From Salpingoeca rosetta (Eukaryota; Protista; Choanoflagellata): a stretch of 64,000 nucleotides of DNA. Below, piece after piece: positions 6,049 to 27,675 of this stretch. Location: contig JAWQFM010000003.1 of NCBI GenBank assembly GCA_033442325.1, forward strand, positions 998,360 through 1,062,359, read 5' to 3'. Position 1 is the stretch's first letter; every line of letters begins with the position of its first letter. The notes beneath the pieces are model-generated. The model did not search any database, was not told where the DNA came from, and saw only the letters and a program-made list of their open reading frames with translations. The translations under genes were made by a program, and so were the position numbers.

Positions 6049-8273
<2,225 letters not shown>

Positions 8274-14271: not shown

Positions 14272-14466
14272 TCAACGGGCGAGGTGGGGTGCGAGCGCAT
14301 GTGTGGTGTTGATGGCGTGTCGCCAGGCCGCATGCTGCCCAACACAGATGACGAGCCGGCGTGCGCGGGTGACGCCCGTGTAGAGGAGATTGCGGTTCAG
14401 GAACGAGGCGTGCTCCATCGTCAGCGGAATCACAACAGCCGGGAACTCAGACCCCTGCCCAGAGGG

Positions 14467-14565
<99 letters not shown>

Positions 14566-14568
14566 TGA

Positions 14569-14611
<43 letters not shown>

Positions 14612-14668
14612 AGTGAGAGAGAGAGAGAGTGTGTGTGTGTGTGTGGGAGTGAGTGAGTGAGTGAGTGA

Positions 14669-14707
<39 letters not shown>

Positions 14708-15356
14708 AGTGAGTGAGTGAGTGAGTGAGTGTGTGTGTGTGTGTACGTAAGCAAGTGGAAATGTGCGTTCAGATGCGCGTGCTTGCACGCGTGCAGGAAC
14801 AAGGTAGGTTGGATCAATGCCAATCAGAGACACGCAAGCACCCAACCTGTGCCTTGTGGATGGTGATGGCATATCCGAGTGCAAGCGTATCAAGATCAAA
14901 TGGGCTGTACCCAACAATCACATCGCCCTCGTGCAGGTTTGATGTTTGTCCGCGATCGAACTGAACATCCAGCACGTGGTGCCGCTGTCATCACCAGCGT
15001 CATCATGGTGGTGGCAGCAGCGGTGGTGGTGAGTGTGTCGCGGTGACGAACGGCCCAGCAGCGTGTGTGTTGTGTGGAAACTGTGGTAACTGTGGAAACT
15101 CGTGGGGTGGTGGTCGCACGGTGGCAGCGTGTGGAAACTGTGACACACATGTGGCCCACCTTGTTGGGAATGGAGACGACTTGGCCCATTTCGCCGTTGT
15201 ACACGTCCTTCTCCCTATTGTTCACCGTTTGAATCACCTGCACCCGCGGGTTGATTTTGAGATGACAAGGGATTTGAGGTGGGAGAGCGCGATCGGCAGA
15301 ACACGAAAGTCCCGCTAATGTAAGGGCAGCAGGCACACATGCGCAAAAGGCAATCC

Positions 15357-15431
<75 letters not shown>

Positions 15432-15847
15432 TGTCTGAGAGGCGAAAGCCGTGTCTGTTGATGGTGCGCTGGTCCTTGTCCTCGGCCATGTCCACAAATG
15501 CCCCCTGCAACATCGTGTTGAGCTGACGGGAGCTTGCAAGCCCGCGCTGGCGAAGCGGCGTCAGCACCTGGTTGAGTGGAGACAACGCACGGTGGAGCAA
15601 AACAGCAGGGATGTGGGCCGAGGGCGAGGATGTTGAACGGTAAGGGGGTGGTGAACGATCAGCATGGGTTGTGGCGACGACGCAACGTGTGCTGGCATGG
15701 GAAGAAGAAGCGTTAATGCACCGTCACATGCAATGGCGTCATGACGAAATGAGACAGAATAGGGGAGGGTGCGGGGGGGGGGCGTGGTTGTCTCGCACCT
15801 GAATGTCTTTCAGAGGATCAAACCCAAACTGGTCAGGAATCTGTTTC

Positions 15848-15904
<57 letters not shown>

Positions 15905-18900
15905 ACACACACACGTGCACAGGGAACGTTGATGAGTGGGCACAGCAGTGTCATGGTGCCACATATGTATGTTTGTACAAGAGTGTGTATGTATGTGCGT
16001 GTGTATGCGTGTGTGTGTATGTATATGTGTGTGTGCCAAGCAACGCATGCTTCTGCTGCACACCTCTTGCGTGACAAGTTCAACGACGCGAGTTGGAATG
16101 TCTTTATCCTGTCATAAACAAGGTTGAGGTGAATATAGGCACGATGGACATTGGAAAGCAAAGTTGGGGGTGAGCAGAACGAAGAAACACTCAAACGTAC
16201 ATGCGCAAGCACACACACACACACACACACACTCCCCATACCACATTGGTACACATGCAAACGCACTCACGCTCACTCACGTTACAGAAGAGGAAGGCAA
16301 AGTCTGTGTGGTCGGACGGGAGGCGATCAAGGACGTCAATCTCCACGCGTCCGCTCGCAATCTCGCGCGAAACAGTCTGGATGCGCGAATTGTTTGCTTG
16401 CTGCCTGTGAACCTCTGTGAGCCTGACAGGCGAAATGTCGAGCGTTTGCGCAACATTGAAGATGCCGCACGCCCCAATCTGCATGGTGTGTATGTGTGCG
16501 TGTGTATGTGTGTGAGTGTATGTGAGCCTGTGCGTGTGTGGAGTTGAGAAGGAAGAGAAGGGGGAGCATTACGTGCAAGCAATGGAGGTATGGGTATGGG
16601 CAAGTGGGCGTTGCAAGTGGGTGTTGCATATGCTGGCGGATACCGGCGGGAGCTGGTCTGGATCACCGATGAAGTAGATGGCCGTTCGCGGGGACAGGCA
16701 CCTTTCGCATTCACATTGACACACAATGAAACCAGCACGTCTCAGTGAGGAGGGTGGGGGTTAGGCACGATGACAGCTACGGCAGCAGCAGTGAACCAAG
16801 CGCAGACACCAGCCACGTCCACAGTGAACCGCACACGCCATAACACAGTGCACGCCATCCTCACAGCACAGCGCAACCACTGACTTGAGGAGCGGGTATG
16901 CCATTTCCACGCTGAGCATCGACGCTTCATCAACAATGAGGGCGTCGACGTCATCCACTTTCGGTTTCAGTGATGCCGGTGGCTCAACGTCCCAGTACAT
17001 GCCTGCAAGTGCACATGCACGTGTCGCATGTGTTGTGTGTGAGTGTGGATGGGCATGTGTGCTCTCATGTCAATTGTAATTACATACGCATGTGTGTTTG
17101 TGTGTCCATGTGCGCGCCGACGCATGCCTTGTTGTGCTCTGCTTGTGTGTGCGAGTGAGCAATGCGGTCGCCCAAGAGCTTTGTCAGTGCAACAGGGACA
17201 CACCGAGGCGGGCAAAGGAGTGGATAGTGGTTGCCTTCTCTGAGCTGCGCATGAGGGCGGAGGTGATGCGAGTGGCAGCACGACCCGTCGGTGCAACAAG
17301 GCGCACCGTCTTGTTCGCCGCCCTGGACGTGTGTGTGAAGGGTTAAGGGTCAGCGGTGTGGATGTTTGACTTACGCAGCAACCAGACGACACGCAAACGC
17401 AAACACACACACACACACACAGAAGCGCTGGGCGTATGGACTCACTCGAGGGCGCTGACGAGGCCGGCGATGAGCGTGGTCTTGCCTGTGCCGGGGAAAC
17501 CGGTAAGAATGCCAACATTGCAGCGGAGAAGAGATTTGACGGCGTTCTGCTGCGATGGCGACAGCAGATAGATGGCAGGGTGCCCCTCTAGCCGCAGCTG
17601 TGGACGGAAAAGGGGTGTGTGTGTGTGTGTGTGTGTTGGTGTGTTGGTGTGTGTGTGTGTTGGTGAGTGAGGTTGCAACAATGGGTGAGAGAGGTGGTGG
17701 ATGACGGGCTTGAATGGCACCGGAAACGTAAGTCATCATTGCGCTCAGAACACAGCAAGCGAACACACGCGTGTGCACAGCAGAGACATGAGTGCACATG
17801 CGAGACAAATGCAGAACCACATACGTCATTGACATCCCACGGCGGTGAGAGGCTTGCACGCTTCTTCAAGTCGGAGGAGACAAAGGTGAGCATCTTGTTG
17901 AGTCGCGTGCGCTGAACGGTTGACGGCTGTGGAGCATCGAGAAGCAACATATCGTCACCACGATTGCCGATGCTGCTGCTGTCACTGATGTCCTGGTCAT
18001 CCATGTCGTCGTGGAAGTGCTCGTCGAGACCAAACGCATCGAGATCATCGTCAGCAGCAAACGGGTCGTCACCGATAGCATCATCCGCAGCAGCACCCAC
18101 GTGAGCGCCGCTTGCGTTGTGCTCATGCGCCCCCGCTTCGGCACTGCCGTAGTTGCCATCTGTCGTTGTGTCAGCAGCACTGACGTGGAAGTTGGTGTCA
18201 GTGGCGCCATTTGCACCCGTGTGGCCACGACCGCTGTCGCTGCTGGTGTGCGAGACGATGAGCTCGGCGCTGTTGTTGATGATGCGGTGGATTGCCTCTT
18301 TCGTCACGCCCTCCTGGCCATCAAGACGCCTGCAGTGGAAACAGGGAGCGTACGGTGTGCAGTGAGTGCGGTGTGAGATGCGCCGACGCAATGACATACG
18401 AAAGACATGAAGGGGAGGGGGGAACAACCATGCCGCATTCATCACCGGCCTTGCACACACACACGCACACCACACACACACACACACACCACACACACAC
18501 ACACACACAATCACCTGCACACACACGCAATCACCTGCGCACACGTACAATCACGCATGGCTCACTTCATGACGTAGGAGGTGAGCTGGCTGAGCGTGAG
18601 GGAGGATTTGCCTGCAAGCTCGTCGTGGCGCAGGGCACTGAGGCAATGCCCCTCCATGATGTCATCAAGCGAAGGGGGCGTGTCGCGGTTCATCGTCGCC
18701 AGCCGCTGCACAGCCACCATGGGCAGATAGTTGTCCAGCGCAAGCACGCTGGTGGTGGTGGTGGTGTATGTGTGTGTGGTGGTGGTGTATGTGATTGTGT
18801 GTGTGGGGGGGGGGGATGGCGTTTGGAGAGCGTTAGGAAACCGAAAACGCTTGGCGCGCATATTTAAACGTACACACAGACACACAGACAGGTAGATCGA

Positions 18901-19521: not shown

Positions 19522-20201
19522 TTCAAAGGGTGCTGTGGGCGATGTAGGAACGCGAAATGCGCCCATCAACCCACGAGATAGTGGCGTCATGTGCAGGGTT
19601 GCACGCACCTCCCTGACGTATGGAATGGACTGCAGACCACCGCTCTCAATGAGCTCAAACACAGACACATTCGCCTTCTGTGCTGCCTCCACAATACGCA
19701 GTGCACGACGATGCTTCACCCCCTGATGGCAGTGGTGGTGAATGGTGGTGAATGGTGGTGAATGGTGGTGAATGGTGGTGGTTGAGCGCGAAGAAGAATG
19801 GTGCTGTCAAGCAAAGCACCGGGACGCTCTCACAGGCACGCAGACGCAGACACACACACGCACACAACAAGCAAAGGGACCTTGAAGTGGAGGAGGAACT
19901 TGTACGGGTCTCCGATGGACCGATCAAGTTCTTCGAGTAGAAGATGATTCTGATCGCGCGCAGCGTCCTTCCATTCCTTTGTGCTGAACTCCCCGCCAAA
20001 CTTGTCGCCGACGTGCACGCACCACTTTGTGCCGTCCTCGCTGATCTGCCACGACCCGCGCACGCGGATGGCCTCCGACAGGTAGATGGGCGGCGACACG
20101 GCGTGGCAGTCAACCTTCTGCTCCGTGGGCACGCGGGGGGGGGGAAGCAAGGGCGCACGTGCGTATGTGTATGAGGGAGGGAGAGAGAGTGTGAATGAGA
20201 A

Positions 20202-20241
<40 letters not shown>

Positions 20242-21250
20242 TGTGTGTGAGTGAGTGAGTGAGGGAGGAGGGAGGGAGTGAGTGAGTGTGTGTGTGTGTG
20301 TCTGTGTGTGTGCGTGTGTGTGTGTGTGTGTGGGATGTGGGGCGTACACCGATATATACAGGCATCACAGGCAATGCACATGTGCCATCGTGCATGGCGT
20401 GCACAAGATCGCAACACAAATACAGCACACGCGCACATAAGCAAGCACGTCGTACCCCGTGCTCCGTGTCCAGTTCCAGTACGGTGGCGCCAAGAGCGCG
20501 CTTGGGTCGGATCACATTGCACACGCGTGCAACAAGGTCCACAGGCTCGCCGGGACGCCGCGCGACTGTCTCCTTGACCGGCGTGAGCTTGTCTGGCGGC
20601 TTTGGGGCAGCCAGAGGCGGCGGTGGCGCTTGAGGGCCCGACGATGGAACGGCGACATCTGCAGCCGCACCTGCCGCTGACACGGGCACCGCACTGCCTT
20701 GGTCGGTCTGCTTGATGCGCAGAGTAAGGTTTGCGTATGGGGCCTCAAATTGGTTGGGCTGTGCATTGAACCAGCGCACTTGCCGCTGATGGCAGTCGGT
20801 GTGGCGCTGCTGGTGTCTGTGGTGCGGTTGGTGGTGGTGGTGGTGGTATTGTTGGTGATGATGCGGGTGCAAGTGCTGTTGACGGTGGTGGTGACGAGGC
20901 AGGGCCGTCAGTGGCTGTGACAGGCGATGGTGACTGTGAAAGTGCCGTGTGTTTCGGTGATGGAGCTGGTGCAACGGTGAGTGTCGTAGACGGGCGCTGT
21001 GGCCAGGACACGCCTTGCTTCCTTGCCAAGGGTTGCCAATACCAGCTGACGTAGCGCTGGGTGCTTGAATGTGTCTGCGCAAGTGCGCAGGACCAGTGCA
21101 GGTGGTGCTGGTGCTGCTGGTTGCAAGCGCGGATGCACGGCAGTGTGCGTGGCTTCCAGCTGTGGTTCTGGCCAAGCTGCGGACAGTGCCGACCACAGGG
21201 AGGCGAAAGGCGAGCAGCTGTCCAGCTGCGGCCTGCTTCAACGCGGCCAT
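14272..21250 (-). CDS. recD2: RecD2 (YrrC-like) SF1B 5'-3' DNA helicase with N-terminal extension, about 18 exons
   Basis: Motifs in order: [19 protein letters not shown] (HhH region), [101 protein letters not shown]. Confidence 0.9.
14469..14743. repeat. (GT)n/(GAGT)n compound microsatellite in the last RecD2 intron
   Basis: Directly visible. Confidence 0.95.
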
Positions 21251-21766
21251 GGAATCGGAAGCTTCCACGTTGTTGTGTGTGCCACACGACGACAACAACA
21301 GCAGCAGCGTGGAATGAAAACACAGCACACAAGCAAGCAAGAAGCCAACGAGAGAGAACAGAGGGCAAGGCGGCGACAAGGAAAAAAAAAAAAGTGGGCA
21401 CGAGCAAGAAGGCGAGTGATGAACAAGAAGGAAGCGAGTGCAGCTGTGTGTACTCAGTCGCCCTGTTGATGCTCGGCTGGCTGCCTACTGTGTACAGATG
21501 GGAGGCGAGGCAACAGGACGTGGGGCACAGACACCCAAGCAATGCGTGGTGGAACAAAGCACACAACAGCGGCGTGTTTGTTGGCTGTGTGAAGCTGCAG
21601 TTTATGCTGTCGTGACGACCACGCCATATCCACGACGCTGCCACGTCCTTCACACACACCGCTAATTCACAACACTGTTGCTTGCTTGGCCGCGCACACT
21701 CATTCACCCACAACAACAGCCAGCCAGGTGACAGATACGACGACATCACATCAGCGAGTCGCAGCT

Positions 21767-21839
21767 ATGCTGGATTTGTTTACCATCTTCACTCAGGGAG
21801 GCCTGGTGCTCTGGTGCTTCCAGGTACCATCTCAAGCGC

Positions 21840-21918
<79 letters not shown>

Positions 21919-22313
21919 CGTGCGTGTGTGCGTGCGTGTGTGCGTGTGTGCGTGTGTGCGTGCGTGCGTGTGTGCGTGTGTGCGTGTGTGTGTGTCTGCA
22001 GCAAACTGTGTTTGAAGGTGTGGCGGTGTAAGTTTCTTGCTGGCTAGCTCGGCTGTTTGATTCAGCTTCAACGGCGTGCATGCACATGCGTTGTCACCCT
22101 TTAACTCCCACGCACACACACACACACGACTCCCAAGGGTCCGGGATTCTTGAGTGGCGACCCAATCAACGGGTTCATTCAGGACGTGCTGGTGGAGGGC
22201 CGCGGTGCCACTGCTGATTCCTACACCGTGCAGAACTACAACATCAAGTACCGCATCGACGCCAACAACAACTTGGTCTTTGCGGTGGGTCTCATATGCG
22301 CGCGCGTGTGTGC

Positions 22314-22375
<62 letters not shown>

Positions 22376-23768
22376 GCGCGTGTGTGTGTGTGCGTGATCA
22401 CTTGTTTGTGTTGTTGTATTTCGGGCTGTGAGGCTGTCCACTTGATGTGCGGTTGTGTGTGCATGTGTGCACTCGCCCTGCGTGACTACACCTGTGTTGC
22501 CTGTTCATCGCTTCTGCCTGCTTTTTTGTTTGCCACTCCAATGTGACGTGGCATTGTCTCGCGTGCTGTGCTTCATTCATGCCATAGGCGGTTTACAACA
22601 AGTCCGTCGAGAGTGAGAGCGGGTACATCGACAACCTACTGAACGTCGTCAAGAAGGACTTTGTCACACGATTTCAAGGTGGGATACCGCTGTCTCGTGA
22701 TGTTCGTGTGCATGCACCGCCAGCTGCCAGTCGGCAGCAGCATCCTGGCTACAACCCCCTTTGTACACACACCAGCATTTCCTTCACATCTGCGCCTTCC
22801 CACTCACCCATGCATCCACTATGTTTGCCCTCACACACACACACACACACACACACTCTCTCTCTCTCTCTCACTCACACACACACACACACACACTCTC
22901 TCTCCTTCTTGGTGATTGTTGCACCAATTCCCCCTGACCCCCGCGCTGTGCAGACGAGTTGCAGCAGGGCACCATTACGGGGCTTGATTACACCAACGTG
23001 TTCCAAAAGGCATTGGGAAAGGCGCAGCAAGACTACGCCGAGGAGGTAAGCACAGACCAACGAGGCGGCGGTCAACGGGGCCGGTAACAATAAGCACCGT
23101 TGCTGACACCTCCCTTGCTTGGTTGCAGTCCGTAGTCTCGTCCTCACCCTTGTGTATTGTCATCCTTCACACGTGCACACGCACATCCACGAACACACCC
23201 ATCCACTCATACATGTTCACCAACACGCGCTGCCATTGCCAGACGTCGCGCGGGATGCGCACGTTTGAGGAGACAGAGCGCTTTGCACACACAGCCAAGG
23301 GCTCCAACCTCACACGCAAAGGTGTGCACTGCCGCACTCTGGCGTTACACGATACGTCACATGTGTGCTGTGGATATGGTTTGATCACTGCTCACGCGGA
23401 CACATGTGTGTGTGCGTATGTGTGTGTGTGTTTGTGTGCGTATGTGTGCGTGCGTGTGCGTGCACAGCACGTGAGCAGCTGCGAAAGGAGCGGCAGCAGG
23501 CGCGTGGCGGGAGTCACGGAGAGGACGAGCTGTCGAGTGGCGAGGGCGACGATGATGACGGCAGCAGCGGTGGGGACGAGGACACGACGACAGGCGGTGA
23601 CGCAACCAAGACCGGCAGTGGCAATGGTCCCGCCGTTTCTGCAGAGGAACAGCGCAGACGCCGCGCACTCGCACTCAAGGTGCCCGCTCGTGTGCGTGTG
23701 CGTGCGTGTATTTGTGTGTGTTTGTGTGAGTGTGTGTGTGTGTGCGTGTGTGTTTGCGTGTGTGTGTG

Positions 23769-23803
<35 letters not shown>

Positions 23804-25721
23804 GTGTTCGCGTGTGTGTTTGTGCACCATCGTTTCGTGGTTTTGGTGGCTACATGGCTGCATCCCGTTTGTGTGATGTTCATGTCGCTAACGCCCCCCT
23901 CCCTCCGTATGCATGCCTTCTCCTTGTCAGAACAAAGGCGTGCGGGGCCGTCGCTCCGGCGGTGGAAAGAAGCCGCGATCAGCGGCGCAGCAGCCATCAT
24001 CATCATCGTCGTCGTCACCAGCCAACCCGCCGCCCCGCAGCCGCGTCAGCACACGCGTCGAGCCAACAAAGGTGAGGGGTGTGGTGTGCGTGCGTGAGCG
24101 ACTGCGTGTTGCAAGGTTCTGTGCACGTGAGTTGTGCGTTGACGAGGTTGCACCCGCGCGAATATTAGCGACACCACATTCACCCCATCCTCCCTCAACG
24201 AACGTCCATCCAATCCATGTGCGCTCCCTGCCTCTCCTCCCCCCTGCCGTACGTTCCTCGCCTCCTGTTCTCCATCATCACCAGCACACGCAGCTGAGCT
24301 ACTGCGACCCCGACGATCGGCCCGAGGCAGCAGACGCCATCAGCGCCGACGACATCGCCGAGGCCGTCAGTTCCCTGCACTTGCTGCTCCAATCTCGCTC
24401 GCATGGTTGTGCGTGGCTGCGTGTGGACGCGTGTTGAGTCCTCTGCGAACCCGCTTGTGCTTCCAATACGTGACCACCACCACCAAAATCGTCACTAGTC
24501 ACCACGATTAATCACCACCACAACCACCTCCTCCCCCCCCCCACAACCACCTCCTCCTCCGCCTCTGGTGTTGCGGGTGCAGAAGCGGCAGGCTGCGCGG
24601 ATGGCGGAGGGCGTGCAGGACGTCGACTTTGGCTTTGACGCCGACGAGGAGCTGCTTGGGCAGGAGGACGGCGATGACGACGGCAACGCAGCCAACGCCT
24701 CCGCCTCAACAACAACAGGCAGCCTCTTTACCCTCTTCAGGAAGTGAGCGCGCTGGTTGCTGGGGTCTGCGTGTGTCATGCGTGTGTGTCAACGTTGGTT
24801 CTGTTCGTTCAGGTTCTCACCACTCTTTGTGTATGTGTGTGTGTGTGCGTGCGTGTGTGTGCAGGATCACGGGCACGTCGGAGATGACGAAGGAAAACGT
24901 CCAGCCCATCCTCGATCAGGTTCGACGCGCGCGCGCGCGCGTGTGTGTGTGTGTGTTTGTACGCCGCTGCAAGCTTTGCACTCGTCTTACTACTATTCTT
25001 GCTCAACCACACATCTCTCGTATCATTAGTTCACATGCCATGTCAATGTTGTCACCATTATCGACAACAGATGCAGCAGCACCTGATGGCGAAGAACGTG
25101 GCAGCAGACGTTGCTGCAAAGGTGTGAACCACACACGCACATGTGCACACACATGCACGCACACATGTACACATTCACACACACGTGCTCGTACAGAGCA
25201 CACTATTCGTACATTTGGGTATGTGTGGCTTGTTCTGTTTTTTGCCAGTTGCTCGCTCCTGCGCAGCATTTGTTGCTCCTCATTCCATGCACTCACGCGC
25301 CCACCGTTTCCATGGTTCCTCGCGCTTTTCCAAACACAACATTGCCGCAACCATAATGCGTGTGTGTGTGTGTGTGTGTGTGCTGCAGCTGTGCGCGTCT
25401 GTGGGGGAGAAGCTTGTGGGGCGCACCAAGGGCACCTTCACCACCATCAAGTCTGTTGTGAAGCAGGCCCTTGAGGAGTCGCTCACGCAGATTCTGTCGC
25501 CCAAGCGCCAGATTGACATCTTGCGGGACGTGCGTGCGGCGCAGCAGGAGGGGCGGCCCTTCAGCATGGTCTTCTGCGGCGTCAACGGTCAGATCCCACA
25601 GCGCCACCGTCATCATCATTACGGCTTCATGGTGGTGGAGGCGGCTATGGCGGTGGTGGCGGTGGTAGTGGTGTGAAGTGAGCCTGAAGTCTTCATATTT
25701 CGTCTTACAAACGCCTGCATG

Positions 25722-25819
<98 letters not shown>

Positions 25820-27675
25820 GCGACTCACGCCCGGATGCTCGTTACATTACGCAGGCGTTGGCAAGTCGACAAACTTGTCGAAGATTGCGTTTTGGCTGCT
25901 GAGCAACAACATGCGGGTGATGATTGCGGCGTGCGACACATTCCGCTCCGGCGCCGTCGAGCAGGTCAGAAGCACACATACACACGTGTGCGTAGCGTGG
26001 CCGCCCTCTCATGTTGTGTGTGTGTGTGTGCGTGTGTGCGTGTGTGTGTTGTCGTGAATGTTTGCCTCCTCCTCCTTGGCTGGCAGTAGAGGCTGCCAGA
26101 CCACAATGCACGACTGCGCTCGTTTCCCCCTCCCTCACTCTGTTCTCACCACCACACCCTCCTCACTCCGCCCCCCCCCCTCCTTGCCTCCATTCCATCA
26201 GCTGCGCACGCACTGCCGCAAGCTCCGGACGATGCTGGACGACACGGACGATGCCCACCCGCGCGTGGTTGTGTACGACCGCGGGTACGGCAGGAACGAC
26301 GCCGAGGTCGCGGCAGACGCCATCCGCATCGGTCAGCACGCATGCTTTCTTTGCCCGTTGCGTTGTGTTGTGTTGTGTTGTGTTGTGTTGTGTTGTGTTG
26401 TGTTGTGTTGTGTTGTGTTGTGTTGTGTTGTGTTGTGTTGTGTTGTGTTGTGTTGTGTTGTGTTGTGTTGTGTTGTGTTGTGTTGTGTTGTGTTGTGTTG
26501 TGTTGTGTTGTGTTGTGTTTGCGCGCCGGTGCTTGCAAATTGCGATGCTGTGTGTTGTGACGTCATTCCAGCACCTCATATTGAATGACACCGTTCTCTC
26601 TCAAACCCCGTCCCATCCATCCATCCATCCATCCATCCCTCCATCCATCCATCCATCCATCCATCCATCCATCCATCCATCCATCCATCCATCCATCCAT
26701 CCATCCATCCATCCATCCATCCATCCATCCATCCCCTCTTGTCTCACAGCCAAATCGGAGAAGTATGATGTGGTGCTGATTGACACCGCCGGCCGCATGC
26801 AGGACAACGCCCCGCTCATGCGCTCCCTCACACAGGTGCAGAGAGTGTGTATGCCTGTGTGTATGTGCATGCGTACGTGTGTGTGTGTATGTATGTATGT
26901 ATGTAATGTATGTATGTATGTATGTATGTATGTATGTATGTATGTATGTATGTATGTATGTATGTATGTATGTATGTATGTATGTATGTATGTATGTATG
27001 TGTCATCGTTTCTGTTTCAAGTTTATTGCTGAACGTATTGCCTTCTTGTTTGTTGGAGCTCCCATCCCCTCACACCACGCACACACACACACATTACACG
27101 CGCACACGCACATACACATCCATACACACACATTGTACATTTGCTTCCTCTGGTCAATCAGCTGATTCGAACGAACAAGCCGGATCTCGTCCTCTTCGTC
27201 GGTGAGGCGCTCGTCGGTAATGAGGCCGTCGATCAGCTGACAAAGTTCAACCGGGTGCGTCACCTGCACATCCCCTCACCTGCTCACGACACAATCATGC
27301 TTGAACACGACCTTTCACAATCACAGTCACCTCATACCTTCACACTCACCCCGCCCCTCCTCACCTCTCATGACACGTCCCCCAGGCGCTGCAAGACTAC
27401 TCTGAGGAGCGCAATCCGCGCGTGATTGACGGCATTCTTCTCACAAAGTTCGACACTGTTGACGACAAGGTGGGGACTCGCATCTGCTCAGTGGTGGTGG
27501 TGGTGGTGGTGGTGGTGGTGGTGGTGGTGGTGGTGGTGGTGGTGGTGGTGGTGGTGGTGGTGCCATCGCGCTTGCCGTTGGGATAACGACACGCAACCTT
27601 TACACAGCACGCTCACCACGTGTTCACACACACACACATACACACATACACATACACACACACACACGCACACAC

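Follow-up and report, generated by a model that had tools for sequence, protein, structure and literature searches.

A RecD2-like helicase gene of the choanoflagellate Salpingoeca rosetta with a long N-terminal extension and a candidate mitochondrial presequence

The helicase gene and its transcript

The window, by which we mean the whole stretch of 64,000 nucleotides of Salpingoeca rosetta DNA that was analyzed, carries a gene for a RecD2-like helicase on its minus strand (Table 1). This gene is PTSG_02367 (XP_004996855.1, EGD81651, F2U1Z9), which is publicly named "helicase RecD/TraA" and encodes a protein of 1092 amino acids. Mapping of the public protein XP_004996855.1 onto the window, from 21250 to 14272, resolves the gene into 18 exons and 17 GT-AG introns. 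The introns amount to 3700 nt in total with 54% GC and contain, wherever they were read, long CA/TG or related microsatellites. Exon 1 opens with the ATG at 21250, from which its first 164 codons (21250..20759, minus strand) run without a stop, and the public annotation uses the identical start codon. A previous reading of this DNA, made from the sequence only, had proposed this stretch as a mitochondrial presequence and had given its coordinates and translation correctly. When exon 1 was compared with 1.84 billion representative proteins using phmmer, the single true match was XP_004996855.1 itself (100% over residues 1-265), and the only other protein returned was a spurious repeat protein. 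Searches of exon 1 against Pfam, NCBIfam, and PDB were likewise without a match beyond His-tag noise. As far as such comparisons reach, the N-terminal extension encoded here is without detectable relatives.

Three stranded RNA-seq runs of S. rosetta (depth 1-7x) cover the region from 20350 to 21549 without a gap, oriented as reads of an RNA from the minus strand, with molecules stopping at about 21591. At this depth no joints were found inside exon 1, and RNA joints or loose ends confirm six further exon edges in the gene model (16701/16885, 17322/17446, 19134/19320, 19609, 16644, and 17825). The nearest upstream ATG on the minus strand is located at 21627, which is beyond the end of the transcript, so that the transcript has its first AUG at 21250. 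A search for other in-frame ATG codons in exon 1 found none, and the next in-frame methionine after Met1 is residue 390, which already lies within the conserved region. Full-length enzyme can therefore be made only with the extension attached, and the extension is necessarily translated and a genuine part of the annotated gene. A true start downstream of the presequence-like segment, which the sequence-only reading had itself named as a point against its proposal, was checked in this way, and the start at 21250 held.

Upstream of the helicase gene, and divergent to it, lies the gene of the SRP receptor alpha, which starts near 21767 and therefore leaves no space for an additional upstream coding exon of the helicase. 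This neighbor extends over 21767-26100 on the plus strand, with a Pfam SRP-alpha_N match at 22150-22290 and an SRP54 GTPase domain at 25848-25970 (plus strand). The two start codons are about 520 bp and the two transcript ends only about 50-60 bp apart, and the divergent arrangement of the pair suggests a common bidirectional promoter. At another site of the window (6800-8200, minus strand), stop-free pieces in the six-frame listing resemble a Rab-family small GTPase with P-loop and switch region.

Table 1. Coordinates of the features of the helicase gene within the window.
Feature	Position	Strand	Remarks
Whole coding region, RecD2-like helicase gene PTSG_02367	14272..21250	-	1092 aa; exact map of the public protein onto the window
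5' untranslated region, about 340 nt, without upstream AUG	21251..21591	-	RNA reads up to the 21350-21549 bin; molecule ends at 21591
Exon 1, residues 1-265	20456..21250	-	Ends at GT donor
Candidate mitochondrial presequence, residues 1-40	21131..21250	-	5 basic, 0 acidic residues; Ala/Leu/Ser/Thr-rich
R-3 type processing-peptidase motif, Arg24-Ser-Leu/Ala27	21170..21181	-	Regex scan, pattern match only; an R-10 pattern also fits
His/Gln/Ser/Thr-rich low-complexity tract, residues 41-156	20783..21130	-	29 His, 1 acidic residue; predicted disordered
(TGG)6 repeat in the low-complexity tract	20829-20847	+	Trinucleotide repeat
Previously proposed cleavage site R-x-x-R-W-F/N, residues 156-164	20759..20785	-	In disordered linker; not conserved; pLDDT below 50
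Ala/Pro-rich linker, residues 157-235	20546..20782	-	Outside the RecD2-homologous region
Conserved OB-like domain at the RecD2 N-terminus, first strands, residues 236-265	20456..20545	-	Continued in exon 2 (20117..19881)
Exons 8-18, residues ~671-1092: SF1B helicase core including the SH3 insert, and C-terminal domain	14272..17597	-	All helicase motifs intact

The RecD2-type enzyme and its relatives

Residues 682-1084 of the protein form a complete SF1B motor including the SH3 insert. The full protein matches the Pfam families AAA_30 (1e-34), SH3_13 (2.4e-16), UvrD_C_2 (3e-18) and, weakly, PIF1 (2.8e-07), and it matches PDB 3e1s at 2.4e-36. In the alignment with its relatives all invariant motif columns are retained, namely G706/K709/T710, D785/E786, G812/D813/Q816, and R1062. 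Against the RecD2 model TIGR01448 the protein scores 372 bits and does not reach the equivalog cut-off of 500, with the best stretch at model positions 317-701. Single exons match the same model in collinear order (positions 317-355, 359-388, 408-432, and 464-505), and in these single-exon searches the downstream exons also matched Pfam AAA_30, AAA_19 and, weakly, HHH_RecD2. The OB-like N-terminal domain and the helix-hairpin-helix region are present as well, with the invariant residues G254, L258, E280, G286, W288, G306, and F309. AlphaFold2 predicts helices at 312-399, and the Pfam HHH_RecD2 match is weak (0.032). No second RecD2 locus was found in a search of the S. rosetta genome.

The enzyme thus has the same layout as bacterial RecD2 (TIGR01448; Deinococcus radiodurans RecD2, PDB 3e1s/3gp8), in which an OB-like N-terminal domain is followed by a helix-hairpin-helix region and by an SF1B motor with all motifs, SH3 insert, and UvrD_C_2. 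In contrast to bacterial RecD2, the S. rosetta gene is nuclear and has 17 introns, and its product has an N-terminal extension of 235 residues, an acidic insert at about residues 515-640, and an N-terminal half that is too divergent for the Pfam OB and HHH models, and it scores below the TIGR01448 cut-off. The insert is encoded by exon 7 (17900-18290, minus strand), is of low complexity with 26 Asp+Glu vs. 3 Lys+Arg in 126 residues, and separates the helix-hairpin-helix region from the motor. Bacterial RecD2 has no such insert, and the orthologue from the choanoflagellate Hartaetosiga balthica has another insert at the same site.

The best relatives of the protein are bacterial RecD2 proteins with 40-44% identity over the core, with the one exception of a protein from H. 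balthica with 48% identity (937 aa, EukProt EP00055_P015418). In two core-domain searches, with length windows of 600-1911 aa and 238-758 aa, the top 120 hits included no other orthologue from a eukaryote. When the first 330 residues of the H. balthica protein served as the query of a word search, the protein retrieved only itself, and in a feature search of the ESM Atlas all clusters returned were RecD2 clusters of bacteria and phages. In a quick tree with long branches the S. rosetta and H. balthica proteins form one clade (SH-aLRT 100), the branch lengths of both being 1.5-1.9 changes per column. Both choanoflagellate proteins lack the N-terminal Pfam OB and HHH matches, which are present in all bacterial relatives. 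The low TIGR01448 score, the loss of the N-terminal Pfam matches, and the long branches indicate fast evolution of the choanoflagellate RecD2 after its acquisition.

Eukaryotic PIF1-family helicases are also 5'-3' SF1B enzymes and RecD-related, and the S. rosetta protein has a weak Pfam PIF1 match. The two are nevertheless separate families, and the best models for the S. rosetta protein are those of RecD2. The PIF1 family comprises mitochondrial and nuclear isoforms, and the mitochondrial form arises via an N-terminal targeting signal. Since exon 1 has no second in-frame AUG, there is no sign of a counterpart of these dual isoforms in the S. rosetta gene. Mitochondrial RecA and similar proteins of protists and plants are encoded by bacterial-type nuclear genes with an N-terminal targeting peptide (PMC7050145). 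In contrast to such organelle-imported recombination proteins of bacterial type, which originate from the mitochondrial endosymbiont, the S. rosetta helicase is listed as a candidate for a later transfer. In Table S1 of Matriano et al. (2021; PMC7971027), PTSG_02367 appears with 17 introns, an Alien Index of 138, and the label "FOREIGN", with a Chlorobium RecD-like helicase as best hit, and the M. brevicollis protein XP_001750400.1 is paired with it in the column "HGT in Mbrev". Despite this entry, neither core-domain search had any M. brevicollis protein in its top hits. The helicase and its localization are not discussed in either Matriano et al. (2021) or Yue et al. (2013), and the literature searched gave no description of a eukaryotic or mitochondrial RecD2 and no localization or proteome data for PTSG_02367. 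The sequence-only reading had known of no such helicase described in holozoans. Novelty holds for the targeting, which is not discussed in the literature searched, but not for the gene, which is already annotated and a published horizontal-transfer candidate.

The N-terminal extension and the candidate presequence

In the alignment with the H. balthica orthologue and bacterial RecD2, the first conserved columns of the S. rosetta protein are L239, G254, and L258. A BLASTP alignment with the H. balthica protein starts at S. rosetta residue 231 and H. balthica residue 85 (E = 3e-20). AlphaFold2, run with an alignment of 20 sequences, gave residues 10-201 a pLDDT below 50 and predicted that strands begin at residue 236, those at 236-300 having a pLDDT of about 80-90. 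Since homology starts at 231-239 and the predicted fold at 236, the extension comprises about 235 residues and not 160. An assignment of residues 158-180 as the opening strand of this domain was rejected because alignments, BLASTP, and fold prediction all put the start of the domain at 231-239. The sequence-only reading was thus right in describing a long and acid-poor extension, but placed its end too early. Asp and Glu are completely absent from residues 1-151, the first acidic residue being at position 152, and residues 1-156 contain 18 Lys+Arg and 31 His.

The first 40 residues contain 10 Ala, 5 Leu, and 6 Ser+Thr besides their 5 basic residues, so that the true translational N-terminus of the protein is net positive, acid-free, and rich in Ala, Leu, Ser, and Thr. 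As positive controls, the first exons of the S. rosetta MnSOD and citrate synthase genes were inspected, both of which open with 22-28 acid-free residues including 4-5 Arg, and residues 1-40 of the helicase are similar to these two presequences. About the first 26-40 residues of the protein are composed like a matrix-targeting signal. The R-3 match at residues 24-27, although a pattern match only, falls within the usual range of 15-70 residues for processing-peptidase motifs. The amphipathic helix signal of the N-terminus is weak. The highest hydrophobic moment is 0.63 over 11 residues in segment 18-29, which is broken by Pro18 and Gly21, and the only helix that AlphaFold predicts in residues 1-40 comprises residues 2-8 with a pLDDT of about 61.

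For comparison, 184 full-length members of the family were used, nearly all of which are bacterial. The first acidic residue at position 152 in S. rosetta and at position 46 in H. balthica are the top two values of this set, with a median of 2 and the next best protein at 23. The net charge of the first 30 residues is +4 in both choanoflagellate proteins, which is the top value among the 184. A basic and acid-free start is therefore common to both choanoflagellate proteins and is not found in the other 182, mostly bacterial members. The H. balthica sequence, which is acid-free over its first 45 residues, is a transcriptome ORF with further methionines at positions 16 and 40, so that its true start is uncertain. 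Like the S. rosetta protein, it has a divergent N-terminal half. In contrast to S. rosetta, its extension is only about 85-90 residues long and has no His/Gln tract, and no sequence similarity was found between the two extensions.

The DNA itself contributes to this charge pattern. The sense strand of the extension region consists of 41% C and contains a trinucleotide repeat. In dinucleotide shuffles, 7% of the trials gave at most one acidic residue in 156 codons, and 11% gave no acidic and at least five basic residues in the first 40 codons. The charge pattern is consequently not far beyond chance for such DNA, and base composition accounts for much of the presequence look.

Import into mitochondria and its alternatives

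We consider it about evenly balanced, from the sequence features described above, that the protein consists of a short mitochondrial presequence (about 26-40 residues) and an intact RecD2 enzyme, joined by a disordered linker that derives from repeats. In such an arrangement, residues 1 to about 26-40 alone would act as a conventional matrix-targeting presequence, positively charged and free of acidic residues, and cleavage would take place after Leu26, where the processing-peptidase motif puts it. Residues 41 to about 235 would form a disordered, His/Gln/Pro/Ala-rich linker, which has probably lengthened as repeats expanded in a C-rich exon and would be tolerated where it separates the signal from the folded enzyme. 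The putative mature protein would then have its OB-like domain from residue 236 on, next the helix-hairpin-helix region, and at 682-1084 the intact SF1B motor, and in the matrix it may serve as a 5'-3' single-strand DNA translocase or helicase that presumably acts on mtDNA in replication or repair. The wider proposition, that the choanoflagellate RecD2 has gained a mitochondrial presequence and serves as an mtDNA maintenance helicase, is tentative and in our view falls somewhat short of an even chance. Weighed against import are the occurrence of the charge pattern in 7-11% of the shuffles, the weak helix, the unlike extensions of the two orthologues, the uncertain start of the H. balthica protein, and the fact that no RecA or SSB partner was found. 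Such a partner had been suggested by the sequence-only reading, but a genome search gave no bacterial-type RecA (PF00154). The suggested SSB is equally unsupported, as the genome search with PF00436 was without candidates; a small, intron-split domain could escape this search, so that absence of an SSB is not implied.

The main alternative is a nuclear or cytosolic helicase, in which the extension is merely a disordered low-complexity tail from repeat expansion and its charge a by-product of base composition. This is a serious possibility, though a good deal short of probable, and it agrees with the shuffles, with the trinucleotide repeat in the exon, with the predicted disorder of residues 10-201, and with the lack of conservation of the extension sequence. 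The 31 His in residues 1-156 would fit as well, since a link exists between His tracts and nuclear speckles, and through its His-rich tract the protein may associate with nuclear bodies or condensates. On the other hand, no classical nuclear localization pattern was found in either the S. rosetta or the H. balthica protein, the two orthologues independently hold the most basic, acid-free starts among the 184 family members, and the N-terminus is similar to true S. rosetta presequences. The charge pattern also underlies the original form of the mitochondrial proposal, according to which the whole acid-free stretch of about 160 residues is one presequence that is removed at R-W-F/N (residues 159-162). 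The motif is indeed present there and the stretch contains just a single acidic residue, but this version is improbable. The control presequences are only 22-28 residues long; the canonical, better placed R-3 motif is at 24-27; about 75 more disordered residues follow between the proposed site and the first conserved and folded part, which puts the site inside the linker reaching to about 235; and the R-W-F/N site has no counterpart in H. balthica. Cleavage at this position is therefore not upheld.

Least probable of all is that the annotated start is wrong, with translation from a non-AUG codon, for example near residue 230, or with a splice that removes the tract and went unseen. Over residues 1-156 the reading frames cannot be told apart by their codon log-odds, which makes codon statistics uninformative for this part, and with RNA depths of 1-7x a minor splice form could escape. 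Against this, the frame is open over 265 codons, its GC dip at codon position 2 is in phase with the remainder of the gene, and the public annotation agrees with a start at the first AUG of a transcript that offers no in-frame AUG before residue 390 and no joint inside exon 1.

If import does not take place, the extension is an ordinary low-complexity N-terminal tail on a gene that is already annotated. If the short presequence is functional, the sister group of animals would have recruited a horizontally acquired bacterial DNA helicase to its mitochondria, and a RecD2-type enzyme would join the few mitochondrial DNA helicases, which include Twinkle, PIF1, DNA2, and SUV3. As S. rosetta is transfectable and editable, this gene would then be a tractable model for the gain of targeting signals by acquired genes from C-rich, repeat-prone first exons.
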